64,000 nt of DNA from positions 124,001-188,000 of IMG/VR virus record IMGVR_UViG_3300037087_000760; one strand, written 5' to 3'. Under the pieces are notes generated by a model, which was given only the letters and a program-made list of their open reading frames with translations, ran no database searches and was not told where the DNA came from. Positions 10,927 through 46,403 of this stretch are shown in pieces. Every line of letters starts with the position of its first letter. Position 1 is the stretch's first letter. A program made the translations under genes and the position numbers.

Positions 10927-11039
10927 ACTCCAACAGGGTTGCACCCTGATTCTGGGAATGTTACTGGATTTCTCCACCCAGCATCACATCTTGCTGACTT
11001 TTCAGACCTTTGTAGTTTACCTGCAATTGGATTGGAGTA
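10927..11039. ncRNA. Candidate structured RNA
   Basis: Intergenic, GC-elevated; closing stem ACTCCAA/TTGGAGT with nested hairpins. Confidence 0.35.
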
Positions 11040-11395
11040 TAATTTTTAACACAATCCCAATTTACCAGCATTTAGAATTTCAGTCTCAACCAATCTCAAC
11101 CATTCTTTAAAATCATTAATCTCTTGAACAGTTAATTTTTCATTGAGAGTATTACATACTATATTGGTCAGTTTCGAATTGTTTGAAACATGAACCATCT
11201 TTGATAATAAATTTCTATCCATTGTCTTTATATTTTTTATAAAGGTAAAAACTTTAATTGAATAAAAAAAATTCGTCTTATACCATTATATATTTTTTTA
11301 TCTCAGGGGATTGTTGTAATTTTGTACAGTAAACATAAAAATTTCATTTTTTTATTCGAAAAATGTTTCATATATTTGTAAAAAATAACTAAAAG

Positions 11396-12616
11396 ATGGA
11401 TAAGTATAGTTTCCTTGACCAAGACCAATACAAGTTTACGATGATGCAGGCCGTCATTCGACTTTTTCCAAATTTAATAGTCAGATACAAATTCATTAAT
11501 CGTGGAAAGACAGTTTGGCCAGAGGGAATGGCTCAAAAACTCAGAGAACGATTGAAACGATTTTCCGAGGAAGCAATTCTTACAAAAGAAGAATTGGAAT
11601 ATCTTTCTGGAATCCGTTTTTTCCTTCCATTCTTCCTTTGGGTTCTTTCAAAATATCGTTTCGATGTAAGTGAAGTTCATGTTACCGATAATATTGACGA
11701 TACCTATGTTGAGGGATACTGGTGGAGAACAATCCTTTGGGAATGTATATTTTTATCAATGTTATCTGAGTTATATCACGAGATGACAGGTCATAAACTT
11801 CCCGAAAGAAGTATCCTTACCAAACTTAATATGAGTAAAGGGTGGGATTTTTATAAAAACGACATCAATTTCGTTGAAGCTGGTTTCCGCCGTAGGTTTT
11901 CTTTCGATAACCAAGATTATGTTATCAATGATTTGATTAAATCCTCAAAAAGTTGTCTTATCGGTACAAGTAATGTATATTTCGCTAAAAAATACAATCT
12001 GATACCAATCGGGACTGTCGCTCACGAATGGTACATGGCTCATTCAGCTATGTTCGGATATCATGAAGCAAACCGTAAATCATTAGAAGATTGGATCAGG
12101 GTTTACAATGGAGATTTGGGTACGGTATTACCCGACACTTTCACATCAAAGGCATTTTTCAACATTTTCGATACACACTTCGCTAAATTGTTTGATGGGT
12201 TCAGACAAGATAGTGGTGATCCCTTTATCATCGGTCATTTGGGTCTTGATAATTATTACAGGACAATTCATGATAAACATATAATTCAGTCAAAGTCAGT
12301 TATTTTTAGTAACGCCTTGGATAATCTCAAATCAATCCTTGAAATCAGTGATGAATTCAAAAAAGAACTTATTACCCGTTTCATGATTGGAACTTGGTTA
12401 ACTTGTGATATTCCTATCATTTCGGATGAATCGAAGTCTGTTGATTTTTCTACTATGGAAAAAATAAAACCATTAAACATTGTCATGAAATTATCTCATG
12501 TGTTTATTGATGGTGTATGGATTCCTGTTGTTAAATTGGGAGATGGTAGTGGGGAGAAATATACAGGTGATCCCAATCAGATTGATTTAGCAAAAAGAAT
12601 TTTAAATATTAAGTAA
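11396..12616 (+). CDS. pncB: Nicotinate phosphoribosyltransferase
   Basis: LDQDQYKFTMMQAV, EAGFRRRFS, GTSNV, GTVAHEW, PDTF, RQDSGDP, VKLGD. Confidence 0.93.
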   Translation: MDKYSFLDQDQYKFTMMQAVIRLFPNLIVRYKFINRGKTVWPEGMAQKLRERLKRFSEEAILTKEELEYLSGIRFFLPFFLWVLSKYRFDVSEVHVTDNIDDTYVEGYWWRTILWECIFLSMLSELYHEMTGHKLPERSILTKLNMSKGWDFYKNDINFVEAGFRRRFSFDNQDYVINDLIKSSKSCLIGTSNVYFAKKYNLIPIGTVAHEWYMAHSAMFGYHEANRKSLEDWIRVYNGDLGTVLPDTFTSKAFFNIFDTHFAKLFDGFRQDSGDPFIIGHLGLDNYYRTIHDKHIIQSKSVIFSNALDNLKSILEISDEFKKELITRFMIGTWLTCDIPIISDESKSVDFSTMEKIKPLNIVMKLSHVFIDGVWIPVVKLGDGSGEKYTGDPNQIDLAKRILNIK

Positions 12617-14964
12617 GATGGAAAACTATTTAAGTCCAAAAACAGAAAAAATAATAGAAGTATTCGCTATTATTTTAACTTGTGTGTTCATGTTTGGTGT
12701 GATTCTTACACCAGTAATGATATCCTATTATTATTTTCATTTTGATACCTATTATATTGGTTTTTTAGTATCAGCTATAATTACAACAGAGATCAGTGTT
12801 GGTATCAAAATTTATGGAAAGAAAATAGAAAAAAAAGGAAAAATACCATTTAGAGAATATCTAAATCAATTAAAACCAAACATCATCACTGATATTTTTG
12901 TGATTCTCTCATCTTCCATACTACTTATGATTATATGTGCAGTAATCACTTTTATTTTAGCTCTCTTTGATATCAATCATTTTACAAATGGTTTTCTAAA
13001 TGGAATCATTTTGGCACTTGTGTTGATAGGAATTAATAAATTGTATAAAAAAGAAATTAAAGGAAAATCTTTGTTGGTATGATAATTACAAAACGAACAC
13101 CATTTGGAGTTAATACAATGGACATTCCTATTACGGATAGTCAATTGGATGAAATAGTGAATTCTGATAAACACATTCAATATATTTGTCCTGAATTACC
13201 TGCTTGTGAAAGGGAATTTCTTATTTCAGGAACTACACCTAAGGAATGGGAGAAAATGTTCGGTGGTTGTAGTAATCATTGTCAACCATGTAAATATAAT
13301 GTAATTCAAATCAATGAACCATGAAAAAAATATTAGAAAGAAAAGATTTTATCAAATTTACGCATCTGAAAAGTTATATAGAATCTGAGGTGATCGGATT
13401 AAATTTGGGTGATTACCCAAATACAGAATTCGATCAAACTAAATGGGGGGATTTGATTTTTAATCTAAAACTTATGTTTCATTGGTTGAACCATATGAAT
13501 TCACATTCTTATACAGGAATGTATCATGGATCAACAGGATTCTTACATATCAATAAAATTAAAACTGTACCTAATTCAGAATTGAAAATTGTTATCAATG
13601 AGAACAACGACATTGAATTTCTTGTAGTAAAACGAAATACTTATAAATTAAACTTATATAAATCTTAAACAAATGAAAAAATCAAATGTTAAAAGGCTTG
13701 TTGTCTATTTAAACAACATTGGAAAAAACAAAGATTTTCATACAACTTACACATACAAAGATGTTGTTGATGAATCTGAAGCAATACGTGTTGTTTGGGC
13801 TATGCATTTAGGGCCAACAGATAACACAAGTGATGTGTTGTTAAAAATAAAAAAGGTCATCTTCAACAATAAACCACTTACTTCTTTTGAGAAAAAGATA
13901 TAAATGAGAACATATGGAAATACTTGGGGGGTTTTTGATAAGGATGATGTGAATGTTCAATCCCAATTAGTTCTTGCTAATTTAAGAAAAGGCGATAAAC
14001 TGAAAATTGGTTCTATTGAATATGAAGTAACTGTCCAAACCAAGAAAACCCTAAGATTAAAATCCGATAAAAAATGTTATTCATTTAAAATTTGGATGTT
14101 GGAAGAATTTGGAAAGTGGTGTTGTAATGCGGGTAAAGGGTATGATCCAGCTGATAAAATATTGAGTGATATACAGGGTGATTTAATTCTGGATAGTATA
14201 AACTCTAATAACCCACTTCATGAATTGACCGATTCTGGGAAAATTTTATTGAGAGATCCGATTTATGAATTCTCAATAGGAATGAATACTTGGAAGAAAG
14301 CGATGGACAGAATACTTTCAGTAATAAAATGGCACAGCTTAGAAAATGATTTTAAAGATATTGTTATTGATAGTAAATTTATAACAGAAGCTAAACATAT
14401 TTTTTCACTTCCCTTTGTAAAAGAAGAAATTATAAGATATACCAAAGGATTCAAAGGTGAAGCAAAAGAATCAAAAGAGGCCTTTCTTATACTTGGTAAG
14501 TATATGAAAGGAGAAGATATAACGGAAGAAGAAAAGAACTTTTTTAAAGACCAGATGATTGACATTCTTAAAGGTATCGGGGTCATTCTTCCAATTCAAT
14601 TAATACCATTACCTTTTGTGAGTACAATTCTACTTATTGTTATGGATTATACACTAAAAAGTATGGGTATAAAAATTTTACCGAGTTCATTTTATGAGGA
14701 GGAAAAGAAAGATGAAAAATTATAAAGTATCTGATTTTAATCAGGGAGATAAAGTAAAGATTATTGGAAACATTGGATTTGCTCTATCTTCTGGTGGAAC
14801 TTATCCCCCAAAAGATTCGAAAGAATATCCAATGGTCGGAATTATCGAGAAAAAATCACCATGTTTATTATCCTTGATCCCAATTGGTTATTCTATCACG
14901 GTAAATGGATATGGGTTTCGTTTGGATACTCTTATTAAGAATGATTTAATTGAAAAAATAGAAA

Positions 14965-15192
14965 ATGAATCCTGATGAATGTATCGCTTGTGGAAAATGT
15001 TGTAATAAACATTGGTTGGTAAAATTAACGAATGACAGAGAAAAAAAGATGTTTAAAGGAAGTTTGGTTTCTGGTGAATTTATATGGACGAATGAATGTA
15101 AGTTTCTTTTAAAGAATGGTAAATGTAAAATTCACGGAGAAAAACAACCTTATAAATGTAAAGAATACTTTTGTGAGGGAAGAAAAATTTAA
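14965..15192 (+). CDS. YkgJ-like Cys-cluster (Zn/Fe-S) protein
   Basis: CIACGKCC...C.FL...KCKIH..QP..CK.YFC. Confidence 0.7.
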   Translation: MNPDECIACGKCCNKHWLVKLTNDREKKMFKGSLVSGEFIWTNECKFLLKNGKCKIHGEKQPYKCKEYFCEGRKI

Positions 15193-15195
15193 GTT

Positions 15196-15711
15196 ATGAA
15201 TTATCTAAGAATAATATTAAGTTGTTTCGTAATTTATTTGTTTATTGTAGTAGCAATTAGATTATTCGGGAAAAAGGAATTGTCCCAATTATCGGTTGTT
15301 GACTTGGTATTCATTCTTCTTATAAGTAATGCGGTTCAAAACGCGATGGTAGGGTCTGATTCATCTCTTTTAGGTGGATTGATCGCCGCTAGTACCTTAT
15401 TCATAGTAAATTATTTCTTTAAAATTTTCCTATTTAAATATCCCAGATTTAATAAACTGGTTCAGGGGAAACCTATACCACTTATCATACGGGGAGTTGT
15501 AAATGATGAAAATTTATTAAAGGCCAGAATGACTTTTGCTGAATTAAGAGAAACGATCCGTGAACATGGTATAGACCCGAATAATATAAAGAAAATTGAT
15601 TTGGTGTTACTGGAGGTGGATGGTAATATAAGTGTCCTGACTAATAATTTTGAATCCAAATCAAAGAAAAGAAGATCACCACATAAAATGTTAAAAAAAG
15701 ACGCAAATTGA
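15196..15711 (+). CDS. DUF421/YetF-family membrane protein
   Basis: RLFGKKELSQLSVVDLVFILLISNAVQNAM; LEVDGNISV. Confidence 0.85.
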   Translation: MNYLRIILSCFVIYLFIVVAIRLFGKKELSQLSVVDLVFILLISNAVQNAMVGSDSSLLGGLIAASTLFIVNYFFKIFLFKYPRFNKLVQGKPIPLIIRGVVNDENLLKARMTFAELRETIREHGIDPNNIKKIDLVLLEVDGNISVLTNNFESKSKKRRSPHKMLKKDAN

Positions 15712-26858: not shown

Positions 26859-27844
26859 TTTTTTTATTCAATAATATTTCTTATATTTGAGGAAATAAGA
26901 AAATTATGAAGATAAGAATTCAAGTGATTGAAAATAGTAATGAGTCACTATCAATATCCTATACTTTACAGAAACTAACCTTAGTTGGTTGGGTTAATTT
27001 ACAATTATCTGATGTCTGGAAAGAAAAACTTCCCTATTTAGATGGAATTTCACCCATCCGATTCTTCGGAAAGGCCGGGAGTAGTTGTACTGATTCAGAA
27101 AAAGCTAAAACAGTCAAGACTTTTTTGAATAAATCCAAATATCTTGATGATTCTATGTACGAACTAATTTTTGGTTATAAACCTATACATAAGAAAGTTA
27201 GTTATCTCTATTAAGATGAAAAAAGAACCAATTCTTATTACAGAAGATGGTGTACCATACTATGATGAAAATAAGTTGGTCTGGGATACACATGATTTTT
27301 CCTCTGGTGATCCTGCTATAATAGTTAATCCTACATTTTTAGATCAAACACCTGTAAAATATGCTAAAAATATTGATCGAATGTTTTTTCATAGTAAGAA
27401 AAAAGCATTGGAATATATGAAAGATAACATAAGATTTTTAGCTTTGACTGACATTGATAAACTATCAAATGGTATTAATGAAGGAAATATAATTATCAAT
27501 AGAAAAGATTTAATAAAATTACTCAGAAAAAGAATAAACGATGAAAACTGTTAGTATACCAGCTAATGTTCATTTACCCAAGGTCGAAGTCGAAATCGAT
27601 CCACTTGATGTCTTAAAAGAATTAGAGGAAGAATTTTTAGATAAATATGGATGGATTGAAAAAAAAGGAAAGAAATATTTTTTAATGTATCCAGAACTCA
27701 GCTTTGATGAAAAGAGTTATCAAGTACGTCAAGTATCTACGAATGAAGTGAAATTTATTGATGCTATTCATACGATGCAAACTTTTTTACAAGAAAAAAA
27801 TAAGAAATCAAAATCAAAACCAAAATCTTAACAAAAAACTCACA

Positions 27845-29890
27845 ATGAAAAAACTCGCAATTATTTTTATGTCATTACTATTTGTAGTAATGGTTGGTTA
27901 TTCTCAGAAATTCAATCCTGATTCGGGATACAGATTAACAAAGGATACCTTACAATTAAATGAGGTTACTATCAGTTCCTTTCTTCCATACCAAGCAACA
28001 ACCTTGATGCCAATCACTTTTAAGAATTTATATAAAGCTGATTTGGGATTGAAAAATTATGGTCAAGAACCAAGTAGGATTTTAAATACCACTCCATCTA
28101 TAACCACTTATTCGGAATCAGGTGGTGATTGGGGTTATTCTTATATAAGATTAAGAGGTATTGATCAAACCAGAATAAACACCACTCTTAATGGTGTTCC
28201 AATGAATGAACCAGAGGATCAAGGATGTTATTTCTCAAATTATCCTGATTTTCTTCAGTCTGTTGATATGTTACAAATACAGAGAGGAACAGGAATGACT
28301 AAAAATGGGTCAGCCAGTTATGTTGGAAGTATGAATTTCGAATCATATAAACCATCTACATCAAGTGTAGGGGCCTTTTTCGGAGCTGGATCATTCGGAT
28401 CAACCAAAATTTCAATGAATACTGAACAAAATTGGAAAAAAGGTGGGTTATATGCTTCATTTTCTGACCTTGAAACAAAAGGTTATAAATATCATTCTGG
28501 TAATCATTCCAGAAGTGCTTTTCTTGTGGGAAATTATACAACTGGAAGAAATCAATTTAAATTTGTTGGTTTTGCTGGTGAACAAATGAACCAATTAGCT
28601 TGGTTGGGTGTTCCAATAGATAGTATCAATTTAGACCGTAGATATAACACTTGTACCACTCGTGAAAATGATCATTTTAATCAATATCATTTGCAATTTC
28701 ATCACACCTATATTATAGATAATAAATCCAGATTTAATTATTGTGTCTATTATAATTATTTGAATGGTTTCTATACTTATGATGGAATTCATAATGGAAC
28801 ATGGGATACTATATCATCTGGTAAATATAATTTATATGCATATCATCTTTATTCTAACTTCTTAGGTACTAATGTAAACTATTATATTAAACTTGGACCA
28901 TTGGATTTTTATACAGGGGTTAATGGTTCTAAGTATGATAGGGAACATCATGGAACAACAAATGATATCTATACTTACAAAAATACAGGATTCAGAGATG
29001 ATTTAAGTGGATTTGTTAAAGGTATTTTAAACGCTGGAAGTTTCAATTTTTATGGTGATGTTCAATATCGTTATACTACTTTTGTTTATAATGGTGATGT
29101 TTATCTACAACATTTTATTTGGAATTTTCTGAATTATAGTGTTGGTGTTGAATATAAAGCCAAACACAACATCCTTTATTATTCCATTGGTAAAACACAT
29201 CGAGAACCTATTCGTAATGATATGTTTGGTGGTTATGATAATCTATCGTCTGATCCTCTTGGAAAAGCTGTTTTTTATGATTTAAAACCAGAATCAGTAT
29301 TGGATCAGGAATTTGGCTATCGTTATATCATAGGAAATTTAAATTTGAACATCAATCTATATTATATGTTATTCAAAGATGAATTAGTATTAACGGGAGC
29401 TTACGGGCCAACAGGATTACCACTTCATGAAAATGTAGATAACAGTTTCAGGTCAGGATTTGAATTCGATTTTAAATACAGATGGAAATTTGGATTAACA
29501 TTACTTCAAAATGTATCCTATAATTATAGTAAAATAACATGGACAAATAAACAAACAACTCCTGTCTTAACACCAGAATGGCTATCAAATACTGAAGTAA
29601 ATTATAATTACAAATGGTTTATAATCGGTTTGAGTGGTAGGTATCAAAGTTGGTCTTATATTGATCAAAGAAACAACTTCACCATTCCAAGTTTTTATAC
29701 ACTGAATGCTATGATTGGATTAAAATGGTCATGGGGAGAATGGGATATTTATTTGAATAACATAACTGATCAAAAAACTTTATCGAGTGGTATGGTTTCT
29801 GGTGATGGGACTCCTTATAATCAATTTATTCCTCTGTATTATGTGAATGCACCATTTAATTTCTTTACTGGACTTAAATTTAAAATGTAA
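27845..29890 (+). CDS. TonB-dependent outer-membrane receptor (vitamin-uptake type)
   Basis: Signal peptide ending SQ; plug IRLRGIDQTRINTTLNGVPMNEPE, LQIQRG; aromatic beta-barrel ending GLKFKM. Confidence 0.9.
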   Translation: MKKLAIIFMSLLFVVMVGYSQKFNPDSGYRLTKDTLQLNEVTISSFLPYQATTLMPITFKNLYKADLGLKNYGQEPSRILNTTPSITTYSESGGDWGYSYIRLRGIDQTRINTTLNGVPMNEPEDQGCYFSNYPDFLQSVDMLQIQRGTGMTKNGSASYVGSMNFESYKPSTSSVGAFFGAGSFGSTKISMNTEQNWKKGGLYASFSDLETKGYKYHSGNHSRSAFLVGNYTTGRNQFKFVGFAGEQMNQLAWLGVPIDSINLDRRYNTCTTRENDHFNQYHLQFHHTYIIDNKSRFNYCVYYNYLNGFYTYDGIHNGTWDTISSGKYNLYAYHLYSNFLGTNVNYYIKLGPLDFYTGVNGSKYDREHHGTTNDIYTYKNTGFRDDLSGFVKGILNAGSFNFYGDVQYRYTTFVYNGDVYLQHFIWNFLNYSVGVEYKAKHNILYYSIGKTHREPIRNDMFGGYDNLSSDPLGKAVFYDLKPESVLDQEFGYRYIIGNLNLNINLYYMLFKDELVLTGAYGPTGLPLHENVDNSFRSGFEFDFKYRWKFGLTLLQNVSYNYSKITWTNKQTTPVLTPEWLSNTEVNYNYKWFIIGLSGRYQSWSYIDQRNNFTIPSFYTLNAMIGLKWSWGEWDIYLNNITDQKTLSSGMVSGDGTPYNQFIPLYYVNAPFNFFTGLKFKM

Positions 29891-31309: not shown

Positions 31310-31441
31310 GAGTGTATTAGTGTAACGAAAGCACAGGCTGTTTGATGTTAGAGTAAGTTTTAGACGGCGGTCTTGGTCATTAGATTGACAAAACTGAAAT
31401 ATCGTAGGTCGGATGAGGGTTCAAATCCCTCATACATTCCA
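31310..31441 (+). ncRNA. ~130-nt tRNA-like element with expanded anticodon and variable regions
   Basis: GAGTGTAT/ATACATTC acceptor, D stem GTG/CAC, T arm GAGGG-TTCAAAT-CCCTC, GCTGTTT/AGACGGC stem closing an oversized loop. Confidence 0.55.
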
Positions 31442-31713
31442 AAAGGTGATGTGATGGAATAGTTTTTTCCATCCTGTTTTAAGGAGAGAACATTTGAGGA
31501 TAAAGCGAGCCTACATCACAAACAGGATCACCAAATAAGGTGAGGGAAACAAAGTAGAGTACCTTTTCTTCGGATTGAGGCCTTCGGGCCGAGGGAAATG
31601 ACCTGTTCTCCCTCAACTTTTTTAAAAAACGAAATTAAATTAAACTTTTTGAAAAAAAAGTTCTAAAATAGAAAAAAGAGACTTTATAAGTTAAATATAT
31701 AATAAAAAAACAT

Positions 31714-31784
31714 ATCCAGTAGGAACGTAAGTTCCGTTTTGGGACGCTCAGCGACCCAGAGGGGAAAACTCCCCGCAACTGGAT
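31714..31784 (+). promoter_or_regulatory. Four-way-junction RNA at the 5' end of the rplL-tRNA transcript
   Basis: ATCCAGT/ACTGGAT enclosing GGAAC-GTAA-GTTCC, TGGG..CCCA and GGGG..CCCC hairpins. Confidence 0.5.
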
Positions 31785-31888
31785 AAACTTTTTGAAATGA
31801 TTATGACACAGAACATCCAAAATATGATTATTAATCAGATACCCGGTAAAAATACCGATTGGATGAACTTTGTCTATAACGAATATAG

Positions 31889-31921
31889 AAAAAACCCAAT
31901 CGGAAACGATTGGGTTTTTTT
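31889..31921 (+). terminator. Intrinsic terminator of the attenuator
   Basis: ACCCAATCG-GAAA-CGATTGGGT followed by a T-run. Confidence 0.9.
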
Positions 31922-31952
31922 GTTTTATATGTCCACCATAGTTTTTAACTGG

Positions 31953-31965
31953 TGTTCTTTGAAAT
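31953..31965 (+). promoter_or_regulatory. boxA-like antitermination site
   Basis: TGTTCTTTGAAAT; copies at 32414-32426 (+) and 45905-45917 (-). Confidence 0.6.
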
Positions 31966-32044
31966 AATGATAAATCATATTCGGATTATAAGTTCAAAAC
32001 TGATAATCTGAACATAAAATGTAAATAAAAATAAATTAGAAACT

Positions 32045-32422
32045 ATGGAAGATTTAAAAAAATTAGCGGATGATCTGAGTAATCTCACCGTATTAGAGTG
32101 TTACCAGTTAGCTAAGATAATGAAAGAAGAATACGGAATAGAATCAAATACAAAAATTGTTGGTGTGAATGTATCACCAGTTCCAACTAAGGTAGTTGAA
32201 ATTGAAAAAACAAGTTTTGATGTGATTCTAAAATCAGCAGGAACAACCAACAAACTTGGTGTTATCAAATCCATCAAAGAAATGACAGGACAAAGTTTAT
32301 TGGAAATTAAGAATCTCGTTGATAATGCACCAGCGAAACTAAAAGAAAATGTAAGTAAAGATGAAGCTATGTCTTTACTGAATATTCTGAAAGAATTAGG
32401 TGCAGAAATTGAAGTTCTTTGA
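32045..32422 (+). CDS. rplL: Ribosomal protein bL12 (L7/L12)
   Basis: LSNLTVLE, EKTSFDVILK, KLGVIKSIKEMTG, LVDNAP, LKELGAEIEV. Confidence 0.93.
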   Translation: MEDLKKLADDLSNLTVLECYQLAKIMKEEYGIESNTKIVGVNVSPVPTKVVEIEKTSFDVILKSAGTTNKLGVIKSIKEMTGQSLLEIKNLVDNAPAKLKENVSKDEAMSLLNILKELGAEIEVL

Positions 32423-32449
32423 AAATAATAAAAAATGTAGTAGCGAGTT

Positions 32450-32546
32450 TGAGTGTTACTTCGTAGCTCAACAGTCGAGCATCAATCAGTTAAATTGAAA
32501 GTTGTGGGTGCGATTCCCACCGAACCCGAAAGGGTAATATCACTCA
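32450..32546 (+). ncRNA. tRNA-Asn(GTT)-like RNA with a hairpin inserted in the acceptor stem
   Basis: D arm GCTC/GAGC, loop CA-GTT-AA, T arm GTGGG/CCCAC; acceptor TTCG/CGAA interrupted by CCC-GAAA-GGG then TGAGTG/CACTCA. Confidence 0.65.
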
Positions 32547-32571
32547 ATGATTATCTCTACATTTTTTTAAT

Positions 32572-32649
32572 GGGTGTGTAGCTCAGTAGCGTTAGAGCGC
32601 GACACTGATAATGTCGAGGTCGTAGGTTCAAGTCCTACCATACCCACCA
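32572..32649 (+). tRNA. tRNA-Ile(GAT)
   Basis: Canonical cloverleaf with encoded CCA. Confidence 0.96.
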
Positions 32650-32659
32650 AAAATAACAC

Positions 32660-32741
32660 TGTGTCGTACGCAGCCGATCCTGATAAGATCGAGAACTTGT
32701 AACTGGTGTTGAAAATGTGGGTTCGAATCCCACCGGCACAA
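32660..32741 (+). tRNA. D-armless tRNA-Ile(GAT) with 25-nt variable region
   Basis: TGTGTCG/CGGCACA+A; CGATC-CTGATAA-GATCG; canonical T arm; only 8 nt between acceptor and anticodon stems. Confidence 0.65.
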
Positions 32742-32750
32742 CAAAAATTT

Positions 32751-32822
32751 GGGTTGGTAGTACTAATGAAAAACGGCGGCCTGTTAAGCCGCGAGATGTG
32801 GGTTCAAGTCCCACCCGGCCCT
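32751..32822 (+). tRNA. tRNA-Asn(GTT), weak D arm, U73
   Basis: GCGGC-CTGTTAA-GCCGC; T arm GTGGG-TTCAAGT-CCCAC. Confidence 0.8.
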
Positions 32823-32831
32823 CAATATTAT

Positions 32832-32905
32832 TCCTCAGTAGCTCAGCTGGTTAGAGCATTTGACTGTTAATCAAAGGGTCACAGGTCCAAATCCTGTCTG
32901 GGGAG
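32832..32905 (+). tRNA. tRNA-Asn(GTT)
   Basis: Canonical TCCTCAG/CTGGGGA+G; T loop variant TCCAAAT. Confidence 0.93.
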
Positions 32906-32910
32906 CAAAA

Positions 32911-32987
32911 TTCGGAATGTTTGTCTGTGATTGGGTGCACCACACAGATAATAAAGGAAAAATGTGGTTCAATTCCACCATTCCGAG
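32911..32987 (+). ncRNA. tRNA-like element with acceptor and T arm but a single long hairpin replacing D and anticodon arms
   Basis: TCGGAATG/CATTCCGA; TTGTCTGTG/CACAGATAA; GTGG-TTCAATT-CCAC. Confidence 0.55.
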
Positions 32988-32995
32988 CAAAAATA

Positions 32996-33087
32996 GGGAG
33001 TGTAGCTGATTTGGTTTAGCGGCAGACCGTTAATCTGTGACTGAAAATATTGAAATAAAGTTGGTTCGACCCCATCCTCTCCCGCCA
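32996..33087 (+). tRNA. tRNA-Asn(GTT) with 21-nt AT-rich variable region
   Basis: GCAGA-CCGTTAA-TCTGT; G73 plus CCA encoded; C33. Confidence 0.7.
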
Positions 33088-33095
33088 GTACATAT

Positions 33096-33175
33096 TGTGG
33101 TGTATCCCCCATGTCTTATAAACATGCATTAAAAGGGTAATAGCGTGTATGTGGGTTCGAGTCCCACCACCACAA
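33096..33175 (+). tRNA. D-armless tRNA-Ile(TAT) with 24-nt variable region
   Basis: TGTGGTG/CACCACA+A; CATGT-CTTATAA-ACATG; canonical T arm. Confidence 0.65.
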
Positions 33176-33180
33176 CAAAT

Positions 33181-33252
33181 GGTCGGGTAAGCTAACGGTT
33201 AAACTGGATGTCTTATACACATCTTTTAAGAGTTCGAATCTCTTCCTGACTA
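33181..33252 (+). tRNA. tRNA-Ile(TAT)
   Basis: GATGT-CTTATAC-ACATC; full cloverleaf. Confidence 0.85.
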
Positions 33253-33257
33253 CAAAT

Positions 33258-33333
33258 GGCGAGATAGCTCAGACGGTTTTAGAGCGTCGGATTCATAACC
33301 CGGAGGTCGAGGGTTCAACTCCCTCTCTCGCTA
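33258..33333 (+). tRNA. tRNA-Met(CAT), elongator type
   Basis: Canonical cloverleaf, loop TT-CAT-AA. Confidence 0.93.
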
Positions 33334-33341
33334 CCCAAAAT

Positions 33342-33413
33342 AGTCCTATGGCGTAACGCGAAGCGTGACTCCCCTTGAAGGAGATGGTACTGGTTCGAAT
33401 CCAGTTAGGACTG
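33342..33413 (+). tRNA. tRNA-Gln(TTG), C33 variant
   Basis: AGTCCTA/TAGGACT+G; loop CC-TTG-AA. Confidence 0.8.
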
Positions 33414-33418
33414 CAAAT

Positions 33419-33504
33419 ATCAATGTGAACGGAATGGTTATCGTAGAGGTCTCATAAGCCTTTCAACTCGTTGAGTTGTGGTGGTTCGAATCCACTCATT
33501 GATA
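33419..33504 (+). tRNA. tRNA(CAT), Met or Ile2, with long variable arm
   Basis: GAGGT-CTCATAA-GCCTT; variable hairpin TCAAC/GTTGA. Confidence 0.75.
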
Positions 33505-33510
33505 CAAAAT

Positions 33511-33581
33511 AGTCCTGTGGTGTAACGGTAGCATGCGAGCCTTTGAAGCTTTGGGTACAGATTCGAATTCTGTCAGGACTG
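33511..33581 (+). tRNA. tRNA-Gln(TTG)
   Basis: AGTCCTG/CAGGACT+G; loop CT-TTG-AA. Confidence 0.88.
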
Positions 33582-33587
33582 CAAAAT

Positions 33588-33660
33588 TGTTCTGTCGTAT
33601 AATTGGCAGTACAGCACCCTCTGAAGGTGTATGGTGTAGGTTCGAGTCCTACTGGAACAG
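33588..33660 (+). tRNA. tRNA-Gln(CTG)
   Basis: GCACC-CTCTGAA-GGTGT; G73. Confidence 0.88.
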
Positions 33661-33665
33661 CAAAT

Positions 33666-33737
33666 GGTTCTGTGGTGTAATGCGTAGCACGAGTGATTCT
33701 GAATCACTTGGTTAAGGTTCGAATCCTTACAGAACTA
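33666..33737 (+). tRNA. tRNA-Gln(CTG), A73
   Basis: AGTGA-TTCTGAA-TCACT; full cloverleaf. Confidence 0.85.
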
Positions 33738-33738
33738 C

Positions 33739-34053
33739 ATGAAAAAGGACATAAGAAAGACATTTCGTAAAGAGGTATTCACCAGAGATAAGTATACTTG
33801 TAAAGGATGTGATCAAAAACTTGATGAATCTGAATTGGATGCACATCACATCACTGACCGCAATGAAATGCCAAATGGTGGATATGTGAAAGAGAACGGT
33901 ATAACTCTTTGTAAGAAAGATTGTCATATAAAAGCTGAAAAATTTCATATAACAGATGGAAAAGAATGGGTAGAGGGATTTCATCCAGATGACTTATACG
34001 AGAAGATTGATTCATCTAAGGGGAAGGCTGTTTTAATGTCTCAAATTATTTAG
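33739..34053 (+). CDS. HNH endonuclease
   Basis: RDKYTCKGC, LDAHHI, ENGITLC...CHIKAE. Confidence 0.85.
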   Translation: MKKDIRKTFRKEVFTRDKYTCKGCDQKLDESELDAHHITDRNEMPNGGYVKENGITLCKKDCHIKAEKFHITDGKEWVEGFHPDDLYEKIDSSKGKAVLMSQII

Positions 34054-34419
34054 AATAATGAGAAATAATTTTTTTATTGATTTAATTTTTGTATCTTTGT
34101 ATTGTATAAATTTAAATTATATGAAACAGTTTATTAAACCATCAACATTCAAAGAAAGAAAAAAAAGACCAGATAAAACGAAAGTTGATGAATTTATCGA
34201 AAAGTTCAACAAACTTATAAAAAAGGGAGAATTAGAGGCTAATGATGTACTCAATAAACTCCCATACTTAAATGAATCTGAGTTTAATCTGGCTGTTGCT
34301 ATTGCTCGTGAAAATGGTTGGCAATTAACTCAATTTGAAGATAATTACAACACGACATCTTACCAACTTACAGAAATAAAACTTTCTGTTTAAAAAACAA
34401 TATATAATCATTGTTGTAT

Positions 34420-34490
34420 TGTCCTATGGTGTAATGGCAACACGTGGGTTTTTGGAGCCTTAGTTCTAAGTTCGAATCTTAGTAGGACAA
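34420..34490 (+). tRNA. tRNA-Gln(TTG), solitary
   Basis: TGTCCTA/TAGGACA; loop TT-TTG-GA; weak anticodon stem; AATATATA box at 34399. Confidence 0.75.
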
Positions 34491-34585
34491 CTCTATCACA
34501 ATATACAAGAAGTCAACTACGATGGGAATCGAGGCCAACACGACAAGGATCAAACTTCGTTATAAAGATATTGTGGATTTTTTCT

Positions 34586-34611
34586 CCCAACCCGAAAGGG
34601 TTGGGTTTTTT
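34586..34611 (+). terminator. Intrinsic terminator
   Basis: CCCAACCC-GAAA-GGGTTGGG plus T6. Confidence 0.9.
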
Positions 34612-41818: not shown

Positions 41819-42808
41819 ATGACTAACAAAAAAGATAAAAAAATAGGACTTGTATTTGGAAAGTTCATGCCCCTTCATAATGGACACATGGCCTTGATTC
41901 GATTTGCACAATCTCAGTGTGATAAACTATATGTATTGTTATGTGAGGCTAATGATGAACCAATATGTGGAAAAATTCGATTAGGATGGTTATTGGACAC
42001 ATTCAAAGATGATTTGAACATAGAAGTGAGAATTACTGATGTTCAATTACCATTAGTTCCCTATTCATCTAAATTAATAGCTAAAATGTGGGCCAAATTT
42101 TTCAAGGAAGAATTTCCTGATGTGAATATTCTATTTACTTCGGAAAGATATGGTGATTTCACAGCAGAATTCATGGGTATAAAACATATACTTTTTGATA
42201 ATGACAGAGAAGAAGTTTTTGTATCAGCCACCAAGATTCGTAATCATCCACTCATTTATTGGGATTATATTCCCGACATTGTAAAACCGTACTTTGTTAA
42301 GAAAATTTGTATTTGTGGAACAGAATCAACGGGAAAAAGTATATTAACCGAAAAACTTGCTAAGAGATTTCATACTAACTTTGTTCCAGAATGGGGTAGA
42401 ACTTTATGTCCGTCTACAACTGAATGTACCATAGATATAATTAAACAAATCGGTAAATCCCACGCTACTGACATTCACAATAAAATACAATTCTCACATA
42501 AATTTTTATTTTCAGATACCGACCTGAATACAACAAAAATGTATTCCTATTTCTTATTCAATGAAATACCGAAATTTGATGATTGGATTGAACAAGAAAA
42601 TAAGTTCGATTTGTACATTTTTCTTGAAAACGATGCCCCTTTTATTCAGGATGGAACACGACTGACAAAAGAAAGAAGGGATGAACTACGAGATTACCAT
42701 TACGACTACCTTATATCTCAAGGATGTAAAGTTGAAATTGTAACTGGTAGTGATTGGGAAATCAGGTATGAAAAAGCTGTCAGAATAATTGAGGAAAATT
42801 TCGGATAA
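41819..42808 (+). CDS. nadR: NadR-type NMN adenylyltransferase / ribosylnicotinamide kinase
   Basis: GKFMPLHNGH, FTSERYG, VSATKIR, GTESTGKS, EWGR, DTD, QDGTR. Confidence 0.92.
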   Translation: MTNKKDKKIGLVFGKFMPLHNGHMALIRFAQSQCDKLYVLLCEANDEPICGKIRLGWLLDTFKDDLNIEVRITDVQLPLVPYSSKLIAKMWAKFFKEEFPDVNILFTSERYGDFTAEFMGIKHILFDNDREEVFVSATKIRNHPLIYWDYIPDIVKPYFVKKICICGTESTGKSILTEKLAKRFHTNFVPEWGRTLCPSTTECTIDIIKQIGKSHATDIHNKIQFSHKFLFSDTDLNTTKMYSYFLFNEIPKFDDWIEQENKFDLYIFLENDAPFIQDGTRLTKERRDELRDYHYDYLISQGCKVEIVTGSDWEIRYEKAVRIIEENFG

Positions 42809-42813
42809 GAATC

Positions 42814-43104
42814 ATGAGAAATTACAAATTAGAAAAATTACAAGCCGGAGAAAGTTTCGTTACCAGTGAAAAAGGTAATTCCATGTCACCAATTATTAAG
42901 TCGGGACAAAAACATAAACTTGTTCCCGCCACTTGGAGAGATGTAGATGTAGATGATATAGTCTATTGTAAAGTCAAAGGAAACTTCTACACTCACCTTG
43001 TAAAAGCAAAAAATGAAGATAAGGGTTGCTTAATAGGTAACAACAAAGGTGGAGTTAACGGATGGACTAAACAAGTCTATGGTAAGGTTGTAAAAATCCT
43101 TTAA
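42814..43104 (+). CDS. S24/S26 peptidase-like small protein
   Basis: KGNSMSPII.SG. Confidence 0.5.
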   Translation: MRNYKLEKLQAGESFVTSEKGNSMSPIIKSGQKHKLVPATWRDVDVDDIVYCKVKGNFYTHLVKAKNEDKGCLIGNNKGGVNGWTKQVYGKVVKIL

Positions 43105-44360
43105 ATATAAATATTCAGAATTTCATTCAGTTTAATTTTGGTTTCCTCATTCAGTGATTTCCCCTTATTTTCATTATACAGAATCATAAAGGAACTTACC
43201 ACTTTATTGAATTTGAAACTATCCGTATAACCAAATACAGTTTCCTTAAACTTTTCAATATCAACAGTTTCCTTACCAGTTCTTGACATCCATTCATCCC
43301 ATTTTTTGAAGAATCTGATGATACCATTGATGTTCTGGTCTGACCATTGACCACCATCGAAATAATGTCCGATGAACATCAGATAAAACCTCAGAACCTT
43401 TGGATCATAGTTATCTGGATTAACAATATTTCCTTTACTTTTGGCCATCTTGATTCCATTATTCAGAATCATTCCCTGATGCACCACTTTTTTAAAAGGT
43501 TCTTCCTCACTGATCATCCCAATATCATACAGGAACATATTAATAAAACGAGCATATATCAGGTGCATGCAAGCGTGTTCACTTCCCCCGATGTACAGAT
43601 CAACTTGTTTATATTTATCTTTACTACACAGTTCATTTTCGTTGTACGAATCACAATAACGGATAAAATAGAAACTACTATCTACGAAAGTATCCAGAGT
43701 ATCAGTCTCACCTTCAATTGGAATAGGACATCCCCAACTTCTTTGTCTACTGACACACCAATCATGTTGATTCTCCAGCCAATCTCTTTGAGAATTGATT
43801 GTTTTCTTTGGGTAATCAATCCAATCCAGATTTTTTATCAGTCGGTCTTTATATTCGGTGATTTTAAAATACCATTGTTCCATTTGACGAATTTCAATGG
43901 TCGTATTACATCTATCACATTTACCATCTTTGACCTGTTCACGAGCCAGAACAGTTCCACAACTTGGACACCAATTTACTTCACCCCAAGCTTTGTAAGC
44001 CAGTCCATGTTCTTTCAGTTTGATAAATATCCATTGTGTCCACTTCTGGTAAGATGGATCTGAAGTAATTACTTTTTCTTCAAAAGAAGTGTCCATTCTT
44101 TCCATCTGTTTACGGAAATTCTCAATGTTTTCATAGGTAACTTCTCTGGGATCTCTATTGACTGATTTGGCGTAATTTTCAGCTGGAAGTCCAAAGGAAT
44201 CATACCCAAACGGTTGAAAAACTTTAACTCCTTTATATCTTTGGTATCGACAATAACTGTCTACGATAGCGTAATTATAATAATGTCCGATGTGCAGTCC
44301 GTTTCCGCTCGGATAAGGAAACATGACAACCACCATTTTTTCATTTTTTATGTCGTTCAT
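43101..44360 (-). CDS. leuS: Minimal leucyl-tRNA synthetase (no CP1 editing domain, no C-terminal domain)
   Basis: MFPYPSG, HIGH, DSFGLPAEN, CPSC/CDRC, DWCVSRQRSWG, ETDTLDTF, GGSEHA, KMAKSKGN. Confidence 0.92.
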   Translation of the reverse strand: MNDIKNEKMVVVMFPYPSGNGLHIGHYYNYAIVDSYCRYQRYKGVKVFQPFGYDSFGLPAENYAKSVNRDPREVTYENIENFRKQMERMDTSFEEKVITSDPSYQKWTQWIFIKLKEHGLAYKAWGEVNWCPSCGTVLAREQVKDGKCDRCNTTIEIRQMEQWYFKITEYKDRLIKNLDWIDYPKKTINSQRDWLENQHDWCVSRQRSWGCPIPIEGETDTLDTFVDSSFYFIRYCDSYNENELCSKDKYKQVDLYIGGSEHACMHLIYARFINMFLYDIGMISEEEPFKKVVHQGMILNNGIKMAKSKGNIVNPDNYDPKVLRFYLMFIGHYFDGGQWSDQNINGIIRFFKKWDEWMSRTGKETVDIEKFKETVFGYTDSFKFNKVVSSFMILYNENKGKSLNEETKIKLNEILNIYI

Positions 44361-45120
44361 TGTCTTTTAATTTGTTTGAGAAATGTTCAATTGAGATATT
44401 ATGTTTTTTGATTGTTTTATAAATAAGACTTCTATTACTTTCGTTATATTCCATATTTAAATTTTTCATAATATCTCTATAAGATTTTGATTTAGAAATA
44501 ATCCCTTTAAAAAGATTAATATCATAATCGAAATAATCATAATTTCTTTTATTTGTGAAATCTTTCCAATCATCTTTTTCAATTATTTCCTTATCTTCGT
44601 ATCTAAAATAACACCCACCAGCCGTCCCTTTCAATTGACAACTAAATTTAATTTGTTGTCTAAAAATACCTGTTTCTCTTTCAGCTCCTCGAAGGCTAAT
44701 GAATTTTTTTAAAGGAGTAAAATTTTTATCATACATTATAATTGATTTCTTATTTGGATTGGATATTTTCATTAGTTTTTTACTTTTATCAGAATGTTTT
44801 TTTCCTGTCCAATCTACACCATCTCCACCATCTGTACTATTCTTCAATCTAAATCCCCAGCATTTAAATTGAGAAATCCAATATCTTTCTAATGAATCAA
44901 TATTATTTTTATCACCGATATCAAGTATTTCTATTATTGGTGAAAGATTTTTATTTTTGAGATATTTTAACCATTTATTTTTTCTTGTCCAAGGTTCTTG
45001 ACGGATACTCCAATTTGACATATGTCCCCTCAATCTTTTTTCTAAATTTTTGGTCTTACCTACATATTTTATAATTTTATCTTCTGGGTCTGTTAATGTA
45101 TAAATATAAAATTCCATCAT
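44341..45120 (-). mobile_element. Free-standing GIY-YIG homing endonuclease with NUMOD-type DNA-binding motifs
   Basis: YIYTL...YVGKT...R...H, LERYWI, NSTDGGDG, GKKHSDKSK, FISLRGAERETG. Confidence 0.88.
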
Positions 45121-45169
45121 AGATTTTTATTTCTATATATAAAAATTTATGTGTAATGTTTCATAGTTG

Positions 45170-45243
45170 TAACCCCACCCGGACTTGAACCGAGATATTT
45201 AGTTTCTAAAACTAACGCCGCTAACCAATTAGGCCATGGGGTC
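45170..45243 (-). tRNA. tRNA-Leu(TAG) with short variable loop
   Basis: TTAGT-TTTAGAA-ACTAA; 4-nt variable loop; A73. Confidence 0.8.
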
Positions 45244-45253
45244 ATTATTTTAG

Positions 45254-45327
45254 TAGTTCTGTTCGGACTTGAACCGAAATATTTGGTTTTTGAAACCAAC
45301 GCCGCTAACCAATTAGGCCACAGAACC
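45254..45327 (-). tRNA. tRNA-Leu(CAA) with short variable loop
   Basis: TTGGT-TTCAAAA-ACCAA; near-copy of the neighbouring D arm; A73. Confidence 0.8.
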
Positions 45328-45332
45328 TTTTG

Positions 45333-45417
45333 TATCGATGGTGGGACTCGAACCCACACCCTCGTAATGAGGAACGGCTTCTGAGGCCGTCGCGTCTACC
45401 AATTCCGCCACACCGAC
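45333..45417 (-). tRNA. tRNA-Leu(CAG), long arm
   Basis: Canonical Leu D arm GCG-GAATTGGTAGA-CGC; CT-CAG-AA. Confidence 0.94.
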
Positions 45418-45469
45418 AAATTTCAAATATTTACCAGTTTTTTGAAAAACTGTTCAAAATTTGATTTTG

Positions 45470-45543
45470 TAGCACCTGTCGGATTCGAACCGACAAACTT
45501 GGATTTTAAGACCAATATGGTTGCTCTATTACATCAAGGTGCC
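45470..45543 (-). tRNA. tRNA-Leu(TAA) with short variable loop
   Basis: TTGGT-CTTAAAA-TCCAA; A73. Confidence 0.75.
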
Positions 45544-45548
45544 ATTTG

Positions 45549-45632
45549 TAGCCTCTGTGGGAATCGAACCCACACGGTCTTTCGACCACTGGATTTTGAG
45601 TCCAGAGCGTCTACCAATTCCGCCAAGAGGCC
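45549..45632 (-). tRNA. tRNA-Leu(CAA), long arm
   Basis: Canonical cloverleaf, CT-CAA-AA. Confidence 0.95.
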
Positions 45633-45637
45633 ATTTG

Positions 45638-45722
45638 TGGGAGTTGATGGAGTTGCACCACCCGAGCCCTGAGGACAACAGATTTACAGTCTGCCCCGCT
45701 ACTACTTACGGAATAAACTCCC
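45638..45722 (-). tRNA. tRNA-Tyr(GTA), long arm
   Basis: GCAGA-CTGTAAA-TCTGT; atypical T loop TGCAACT. Confidence 0.88.
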
Positions 45723-45726
45723 AAAG

Positions 45727-45811
45727 TGACCAAGGTGGGATTCGAACCCACACGGGCGTAAAGCCCAACGGATTTTAAGTCCGTCGCGTCTACCAGTTCC
45801 GCCACAAGGCC
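45727..45811 (-). tRNA. tRNA-Leu(TAA), long arm
   Basis: CT-TAA-AA; two T-T mismatches in acceptor stem. Confidence 0.88.
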
Positions 45812-45819
45812 AATTTCAG

Positions 45820-45901
45820 TGTCCATAGGGGGACTCGAACCCCCACGCCTTTCGACAATAGTTTCTTAGGCTATCGCGTCTACCAGTTCCGCCATACGGA
45901 C
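45820..45901 (-). tRNA. tRNA-Leu(AAG), long arm
   Basis: ATAGC-CTAAGAA-ACTAT; canonical Leu D arm. Confidence 0.88.
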
Positions 45902-45918
45902 AATTTCAAAGAACTCAG

Positions 45919-45990
45919 TGGGAATAGAAGGATTCGAACCTACAAATCACGATTTTACAGACCGCTGAGCGACCACTGCTCAATATTCCC
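45919..45990 (-). tRNA. tRNA-Tyr(GTA) with short variable loop
   Basis: GGGAATA/TATTCCC+A; CT-GTA-AA; 5-nt variable loop. Confidence 0.85.
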
Positions 45991-45995
45991 GTTTG

Positions 45996-46068
45996 TGGAA
46001 GTACAAGGATTCGAACCTCGAATACACGGTGTTACAAGCCGCTGAGCGACCATCCGCTCACTACTTCC
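45996..46068 (-). tRNA. tRNA-Tyr(GTA) with short variable loop
   Basis: GGAAGTA/TACTTCC+A; TT-GTA-AC. Confidence 0.85.
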
Positions 46069-46257: not shown

Positions 46258-46289
46258 AAAAAACCCATCACTTTTTCAAGGACGGGTCT
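46258..46289 (-). terminator. Intrinsic terminator of the Leu/Tyr attenuator
   Basis: GACCCGTC-CTTGAAAAAGT-GATGGGTT followed by a T-run. Confidence 0.8.
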
Positions 46290-46316
46290 TTCTGATTCTA
46301 TGATAATATTTAAAGT

Positions 46317-46403
46317 TTATCTTTCAGCAATACTAACCCATCCTCGATTTTGATAGAGGTATAAATACAAATAATATAGGTTAATATTTACTCTGTTTTT
46401 CAT
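46317..46403 (-). promoter_or_regulatory. Attenuator leader peptide MKNRVNINLYYLYLYLYQNRGWVSIAER
   Basis: Codons CTA TAT TAT TTG TAT TTA TAC CTC TAT; 13-bp 1:2 stem, 10-bp 2:3 antiterminator, stop codon before segment 3. Confidence 0.85.

Follow-up and report, generated by a model that had tools for sequence, protein, structure and literature searches.

Leader-peptide attenuators are generally described from the amino-acid biosynthesis operons of Enterobacteria (trpL, hisL, leuL, pheL, thrL and ilvL), in which a short leader ORF rich in regulatory codons, mutually exclusive 1:2, 2:3 and 3:4 hairpins, and an intrinsic terminator precede the structural genes. A component of the decoding machinery appears to be controlled similarly in E. 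coli, where the pheM leader regulates pheST, encoding phenylalanyl-tRNA synthetase, in response to the cognate charged tRNA. In the pyrBI (pyrL) attenuator of E. coli, the leader ORF extends through the terminator such that a closely coupled ribosome prevents formation of the terminator hairpin (PMC5021804), while T-box riboswitches are understood to sense tRNA status by direct binding of uncharged tRNA, without translation. The locus analyzed here lies within a 64-kb window of megaphage DNA (positions 124,001 to 188,000 of IMG/VR record IMGVR_UViG_3300037087_000760; "the window" below refers to this whole stretch), and places a short ORF rich in Met, Ile, Asn and Gln codons, followed by an intrinsic terminator, in front of Met, Ile, Asn and Gln tRNA genes. 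Leader-peptide control of tRNA gene arrays, or of such arrays in a virus, was not found to have been described previously in full-text searches that did not reach many subscription papers.

The features of the locus are as follows.

31666..31702 (+), a conserved A-rich 5' leader motif (AAATAGAAAAAAGAGACT ... AATATATAA) that precedes the leader ORFs of this family
31713..31785 (+), a lineage-specific inserted structured RNA (predicted 8-bp closing stem plus three hairpins, cloverleaf-like) between the 5' motif and the leader
31797..31967 (+), the leader ORF as it stands in this phage (56 codons), running through the terminator to TAA 31965-31967
31803..31841 (+), the family-conserved start codon (31803) and the 12 sensor codons T-Q-N-I-Q-N-M-I-I-N-Q-I
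31814..31820 (+), the region 1 core (CATCCAA), inside the sensor codons, which pairs with region 2
31842..31844 (+), CCC holding a one-base insertion that shifts the frame relative to all relatives, which have CC
31855..31866 (+), region 2 (CCGATTGGATG), with the ancestral stop TGA at 31864-31866, out of frame in this phage
31888..31921 (+), the intrinsic terminator (regions 3 and 4), in which region 3, the partner of region 2, is 31896-31903
32045..32422 (+), the ribosomal protein L7/L12 gene, the first gene after the attenuator
32460..34491 (+), the tRNA array proposed to be regulated: one tRNA-like gene, then Ile(GAT), Asn(GTT) x3, Ile(TAT), Met(CAT) x2, Gln(TTG) x3 and Gln(CTG) x2, with an HNH endonuclease gene and a small ORF interspersed
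34586..34605 (+), the next strong plus-strand terminator and likely end of the operon

Direct reading of the sequence confirmed in every detail what a sequence-only reading of this region had observed. Specifically, the ORF starts M-I-M-T-Q-N-I-Q-N-M-I-I-N-Q-I, and its first 15 codons are ATG x3, ATT x3, ATC, ATA, AAC, AAT x2, CAG x2, CAA and one ACA. The terminator hairpin comprises 15 pairs followed by a T run, and the gene that follows the attenuator was identified as L7/L12 by matches to PF00542, PF16320 and TIGR00855 (93.9 bits). Across all six frames of the window this is the only 15-codon stretch with 14 codons in {M,I,N,Q}. In contrast, the argument from the sequence-only reading that all three Ile, both Asn and both Gln codons are present carries no statistical weight, as this is expected from the codon usage of the phage (P = 0.36-0.64). 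When extended to Tyr, such completeness was likewise not significant (P = 0.36-0.75 over Ile, Asn, Gln and Tyr), and reached significance only for five Leu-type leaders (six Leu codons covered, P = 0.003-0.011), which are not independent. Whole-leader binomial tests, taken one by one, were modest (P = 1e-2 to 1e-5), and it is the comparisons across leader types described below that carry the weight.

Predicted folding of the full-length leader yields a 5' hairpin in which CATCCAA (31814-31820) pairs with TTGGATG (31859-31865), followed by the terminator (-39.4 kcal/mol, z = -6.1). When region 4 is omitted, the minimum-energy fold instead pairs CCGATTGG (31855-31862) with CCAATCGG (31896-31903), forming the 2:3 antiterminator. 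Computed separately, the energies are -19.9 for the terminator, -18.5 for the 1:2 domain and about -14 kcal/mol for 2:3.

A second instance is found on the minus strand of the same window, upstream of the only other tRNA array.

46317..46403 (-), the second leader ORF (28 codons, starting at 46403), with sensor L-Y-Y-L-Y-L-Y-L-Y at 46379-46353 and region 2 at 46347-46335
46258..46292 (-), the terminator of the second attenuator, with the antiterminator partner of region 2 at 46288-46276
45169..46066 (-), the Tyr/Leu tRNA array: Tyr(GTA) and Leu(AAG, TAA, CAA, TAA, CAG, CAA, TAG), the Tyr plus seven Leu tRNAs lying at 45990-45169, plus Tyr-like genes that ARAGORN misses
43101..45120 (-), a GIY-YIG endonuclease gene and a truncated LeuRS-like gene following the array

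The sensor of this leader is the only 9/9 {L,Y} stretch in the window, and 1:2, 2:3 and 3:4 folds are again predicted, the antiterminator being 13 bp long. Its stop codon lies before the terminator, and the leader is conserved in L002, a relative, with compensatory changes in regions 2, 3 and 4. The LeuRS-like gene (419 aa) matches TIGR00396 leuS with E = 9e-114 but below the model's cutoff, and a terminator scan detected no terminator between the array and these two genes.

Relatives were identified both through the L7/L12 gene and through a pattern describing the leader scaffold. The L7/L12 protein occurs, 100% identical, on contigs of up to 736,551 bp, and its phage relatives (60-86% identical) form a group distinct from Bacteroidota L7/L12, which is at most 56% identical. 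Among these relatives is the published 735-kb phage LR756503, which according to its authors belongs to a clade predicted to infect Bacteroidetes; the paper, published in 2020, contains no word beginning 'attenuat' or 'leader' (PMC7162821), and the elements are unannotated in that genome. A blastn search of GenBank phages with the leader returned only LR756501/LR756503 and a terminator look-alike in LR745206, which follows a small basic protein gene with no tRNAs and so is not an attenuator. The exact 5' motif occurs only twice in the window, before each of the two leaders, and precedes leaders in relatives. Searching IMG/VR for AAATAGAAAAAANAGACT, however, gave 67 loci, of which almost all were chance hits and only the window's contig and one relative were true; as the motif also precedes ordinary genes in two unrelated phage contigs, it is not specific to attenuators.

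Comparison with these relatives corrects the sequence-only reading in two further respects. Firstly, that reading had presented a leader that runs through its own terminator, unlike classic leaders. Read-through of the terminator by the ORF is real in this phage, as the sequence is identical in 10 independent assemblies from different samples, and the possibility that the extra C represents an assembly error was rejected on this basis. Nevertheless, 12 related Met/Ile/Asn/Gln leaders (those of the relatives L002, L070 and L079, and of nine metagenome contigs) keep the sensor M-T-Q-N-I-Q-N-M-I-I-N-Q-I and all stop at a TGA inside region 2 (GATTGGATGA), the classic position. The read-through is therefore a derived, lineage-specific consequence of one inserted base and not a design feature of the family, and the ORF tail is not conserved in frame in any relative. 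An alternative genetic code was also rejected, as the L7/L12 gene itself ends at TGA with a normal C terminus and long ORFs are intact under code 11. Secondly, the conserved start codon is the second ATG (31803), while ATG 31797 belongs to a lineage-specific insertion. The same lineage has gained the 73-nt structured insert in the 5' leader (fold -36.3 kcal/mol, z = -5.96), which is absent at the same site from L002 and L070, has a similar counterpart in L079, and has no Rfam match at E <= 5. It also has A instead of G at 31909, which turns a G-U pair of the terminator into A-U.

Support for attenuation comes from the finding that relatives carry the same scaffold, consisting of the conserved 5' motif, an ATG, region 2 (GATTGGRTGA) and the terminator ACCCAATC...GATTGGGT, with different sensor peptides in front of different tRNA arrays. 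A leader with K-Y-N-D-Y-C-I-N-D-K is followed by an L7/L12 gene and then Ile, Cys, Asp, Asn, Tyr, Lys(CTT) and Val tRNAs; Leu-rich leaders, although only about one-third Leu, are followed by four or five Leu tRNAs; and a leader with Q-Q-Q-Q is followed by Gln(TTG) and Gln(CTG). All 21 hits of the scaffold pattern in the metagenome collection encode a leader of one of these types, and a matching tRNA array follows wherever the available downstream sequence is long enough. Scanning 220 kb of LR756503 added two more types with different terminator sequences. The first, with I-I-N-M-I-Q-E-Q-M-Q-Q-I-Q-N, a sensor rich in I, M, Q and E with some N, precedes an operon bounded by terminators that holds exactly Met, Gln, Ile(TAT) and Glu tRNAs, while the second, with S-K-H-S-K-H-F-S-S-S-S-K-W-F, precedes Trp, His, Phe, Lys and Ser tRNAs. 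In that stretch 4 of 5 tRNA clusters have a matched leader, the exception being a small cluster of two odd tRNAs and Pro. Over the resulting seven types, the true leader-array pairing gives the highest enrichment of all 5040 permutations, and residues present at least twice in a leader are strongly associated with tRNAs present in its array (odds ratio 23, Fisher P = 3e-9). Because the types share ancestry, these figures describe a pattern rather than independent events, and the tRNA calls rest mostly on ARAGORN, which misses some odd tRNAs. The rearrangements are telling: where Tyr tRNAs sit with the Leu array, as in the window and L002, the leader is Leu/Tyr, and where they sit behind L7/L12, Tyr codons are found in that leader instead. 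The scaffold is not, however, exclusive to tRNA arrays, as two relatives (L075 and L078) have a homologous leader and terminator before L7/L12 with no obvious codon bias and no tRNA genes within about 10 kb upstream or 4-10 kb downstream, although a wobble-paired antiterminator is still possible in them.

Consistent with the proposed mechanism, both competing helices show compensatory changes in an alignment of 32 sequences. The antiterminator helix is paired in 95.6% of cells and has compensatory changes at 4 of 8 pairs; no shuffle of 500 reaches this value, and slid controls reach at most 58%. Most of the covariation is contributed by its two outer pairs (columns 85-156 and 86-155), whose 3' partners in several family members appear to lie in the terminator loop rather than its stem, where only the 2:3 pairing would constrain them. 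The terminator is paired in 93.4% of cells, with 6 of 11 pairs compensatory. The minimum-energy folds of all 32 members show a 5' hairpin that sequesters region 2, although covariation of this helix was considered only anecdotally, in L102. A conserved ATG and an in-frame stop are present in 30+ related leaders, and stop codons lie in or next to region 2 in all types except this phage's copy. Of the four variable sites in the Met/Ile/Asn/Gln sensor three are synonymous, whereas the linker after it varies freely (the extra C is at column 72 of the alignment).

Taken together, these data strongly support, with a high degree of confidence although without expression, ribosome-profiling or 3'-end data, the interpretation of the element as a ribosome-mediated transcription attenuator gating a megaphage operon that encodes L7/L12 and an array of Ile, Asn, Met and Gln tRNAs. 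In the inferred mechanism, transcription starts upstream of 31797 and a ribosome translates the leader. When the matching aminoacyl-tRNAs are plentiful the ribosome clears the sensor, region 2 is masked or re-pairs with region 1, the 3:4 terminator forms, and transcription stops at about 31921. When any of these tRNAs is scarce, the ribosome stalls on the sensor and holds region 1, region 2 pairs with region 3, and the tRNA genes are transcribed. As the products are the tRNAs the sensor reads, the circuit would constitute a negative-feedback, supply-on-demand loop. This account assumes transcription-translation coupling in an uncultured host, and a motif recurring just after the terminators and between genes (GTTCTTTGAAAT) could mark a secondary promoter or a processing site that bypasses the attenuator. 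In the window's own copy, which may be a weakened or altered attenuator, loss of the stop codon in region 2 probably weakens termination whenever a ribosome follows the polymerase closely. Should the ribosome lag, termination would leave it on a stop-less RNA, a consequence drawn by the sequence-only reading that follows logically from the sequence; no SmpB gene was found in the window. A +1 slip at CCC-G would restore the ancestral frame and stop, though this is only a possibility.

A broader hypothesis, which appears about as likely as not, is that megaphages of this clade run a modular tRNA homeostat, in which each major tRNA array is autoregulated by a leader peptide decoded by the array's own products, such that the phage tops up exactly those tRNA families that the infected cell lacks. 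Shortage could arise from codon-usage mismatch, phage-induced turnover, or host defence nucleases that cut tRNAs, and rearrangements of the arrays would be followed by re-writing of the sensor peptides. Why phages carry tRNA genes, and when they need them, is a long-standing question, and a sensor of this kind would show that tRNA supply really limits infection and that the phage measures it family by family. The leaders would be natural reporters of tRNA sufficiency, and the re-programming of one RNA scaffold simply by swapping a dozen codons is also attractive for synthetic biology.

Of the alternatives considered, the one that survives best, while remaining less likely than not, is that in this phage the attenuator is a decayed or re-purposed copy, in which ribosomes translating through the terminator suppress termination whenever the leader is translated, either as coupling-dependent control or simply as constitutive read-through, so that sensing of Met, Ile, Asn and Gln would matter little. 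In its favor, the one-base insertion is unique among 13 Met/Ile/Asn/Gln leaders and fixed in 10 assemblies, the lineage also gained the structured insert and a new upstream ATG, and reporter measurements on a terminator placed close to a translated gene indicate that terminators within or just after a translated ORF are strongly repressed (PMC4824070), as also occurs at pyrBI (PMC5021804). Conversely, the sensor codons, regions 1-4 and the terminator are fully intact, the terminator being even slightly stronger, which argues for continued selection, and the second attenuator in the same genome keeps a stop codon before its terminator.

It is unlikely that the leaders sense amino-acid starvation of the host rather than tRNA supply, with the tRNA arrays merely sharing a general starvation response. 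A stalled ribosome reports aminoacyl-tRNA, and sequence alone cannot separate the two, while the presence of a LeuRS-like gene after the Leu/Tyr array could be taken to favor such a role. Nevertheless, making more tRNA does not relieve amino-acid shortage, so the regulatory logic would be poor, and across the seven types the residues enriched in each leader match the tRNA content of the array and not any amino-acid biosynthetic pathway grouping. Less likely still is a general translation-capacity sensor that mainly regulates L7/L12, as suggested by L075 and L078, since the Leu, Leu/Tyr, Gln, Met/Gln/Ile/Glu and Lys/His/Ser/Phe/Trp leaders have no L7/L12 gene behind them and all match their arrays. 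Finally, although AT-rich genomes produce many Ile- and Asn-rich ORFs and the window contains two other stretches with 12-13 of 15 codons in the set, a chance ORF beside an ordinary terminator or a real 56-residue protein gene is contradicted by the unique 14/15 stretch sitting exactly before the matching array, by the seven co-varying types and helix covariation, and by the ORF tail being out of frame in every relative.

Compared with the amino-acid operon leaders, the phage element shares a short leader ORF rich in regulatory codons, the alternative 1:2, 2:3 and 3:4 hairpins, an intrinsic terminator before the controlled genes and, in the relatives but not in the window's copy, a stop codon placed so that the terminating ribosome masks region 2. 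It differs in that the genes behind it are tRNA genes, plus L7/L12 or a LeuRS-like gene, rather than biosynthetic enzymes, in its viral setting, in sensors that combine up to five or six amino acids, and in the reuse of one scaffold with swapped sensors for each array. Rfam searches gave nothing beyond tRNAs: no leader family reached its gathering score, Thr_leader scoring 24.3 bits against 55. T-box riboswitches likewise control a terminator/antiterminator choice upstream of genes of the decoding apparatus, yet employ one specifier codon and a conserved T-box sequence, for which no Rfam match was found at gathering or at E <= 5, while here an ORF with an in-frame start and stop is present. 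The pyrBI leader shares with the window's frameshifted copy an ORF spanning the terminator, but senses UTP through polymerase pausing and has no codon sensor, and in the phage family running through the terminator is an exception. Above all, the element would work like pheM-pheST, the closest parallel being the Leu or Leu/Tyr leader followed by Leu tRNAs and a LeuRS-like gene; pheM, however, controls a synthetase rather than tRNA genes and senses one amino acid, whereas the phage system would feed back through the tRNA pool itself.

Immediately preceding the leader ORF, a stable cloverleaf-like RNA, consisting of an 8-bp closing stem and three hairpins (z = -5.96), is inserted in the 5' leader (window 31713-31785, plus strand). 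A similar insert sits at the same site in the relative L079 (136-197), while the element is absent from two other relatives, L002 and L070, and has no Rfam match. Such an insert could represent a tRNA-like processing signal or a small mobile element. Similarly open to more than one reading is the motif GTTCTTTGAAAT, which recurs just downstream of the attenuator terminators and between genes of the operons (window 31954-31965 and 32414-32425, plus strand, and 45914-45903, minus strand), and which is also found after the terminators in L002, L070, L079 and the relatives L074 and L077; this motif could be a processing site or a promoter element. In addition, a homologous leader (ending G-K-I-P-I-G) and terminator lie before L7/L12 in two relatives, L075 (9773-9885) and L078 (9764-9876), with no tRNA genes within about 10 kb upstream or 4-10 kb downstream, and in these cases the sensor shows no evident codon bias.

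The tRNA arrays are larger than the automatic calls suggest: tRNA-like genes missed by ARAGORN are present at the following positions of the window:
31311-31439, plus strand
32460-32524, plus strand
46230-46000, minus strand
45720-45640, minus strand
Of these tRNA-like genes, one is 129 nt with an insertion (Rfam 30.5 bits) and one has extra 3' sequence (39.9 bits), while on the minus strand there is a long tRNA-like gene ending in CCA as well as two Tyr(GTA)-like genes. Additionally, in the phage sequences L096, L101 and L125 (minus strand 18911, 19030, 43668), ARAGORN reports tRNAs with anticodon loops of unusual length (two-base or four-base "anticodons") inside the arrays, and these might be frameshift-suppressor-like tRNAs or, alternatively, mis-folded calls.

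HNH endonuclease genes sit inside the tRNA arrays, both in the window (33739-34053, plus strand) and in L070 (10624-10941 and 12048-12440), suggesting that homing elements shuffle the arrays. IS605 OrfB / Cas12f-like (TnpB) genes are located next to the tRNA regions of the relatives L076 (5887-7104) and L080 (14895-15977). Relatives also encode SmpB, an EF-G-like GTPase and an RNA ligase close to the tRNA arrays (L072 7-444; L080 2681-3130; L072, L074, L076 and L077 around 11000-15300), although no SmpB was found in the window. A phage-encoded TonB-dependent receptor-like protein with Plug and beta-barrel domains (window 27758-29890, plus strand; also L070 and L113-L119) is conserved next to the tRNA region in relatives, and the phage genome additionally carries a NadR-like nicotinamide-nucleotide adenylyltransferase gene (window 41819-42808, plus strand).

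On the minus strand of the window, the 43101-45120 locus includes a LeuRS-like gene of only 419 residues, corresponding to the catalytic core and about half the normal length, preceded by a GIY-YIG homing-endonuclease gene; by comparison, the versions present in the relatives L074 and L077 are 504-519 residues in length. Finally, just upstream of the 5' motif of the Leu/Tyr leader, the sequence TACCTTTG (window 46475-46468, minus strand) matches TAnnTTTG, which is likely the -7 promoter consensus of the Bacteroidota, a finding that fits a Bacteroidota host.
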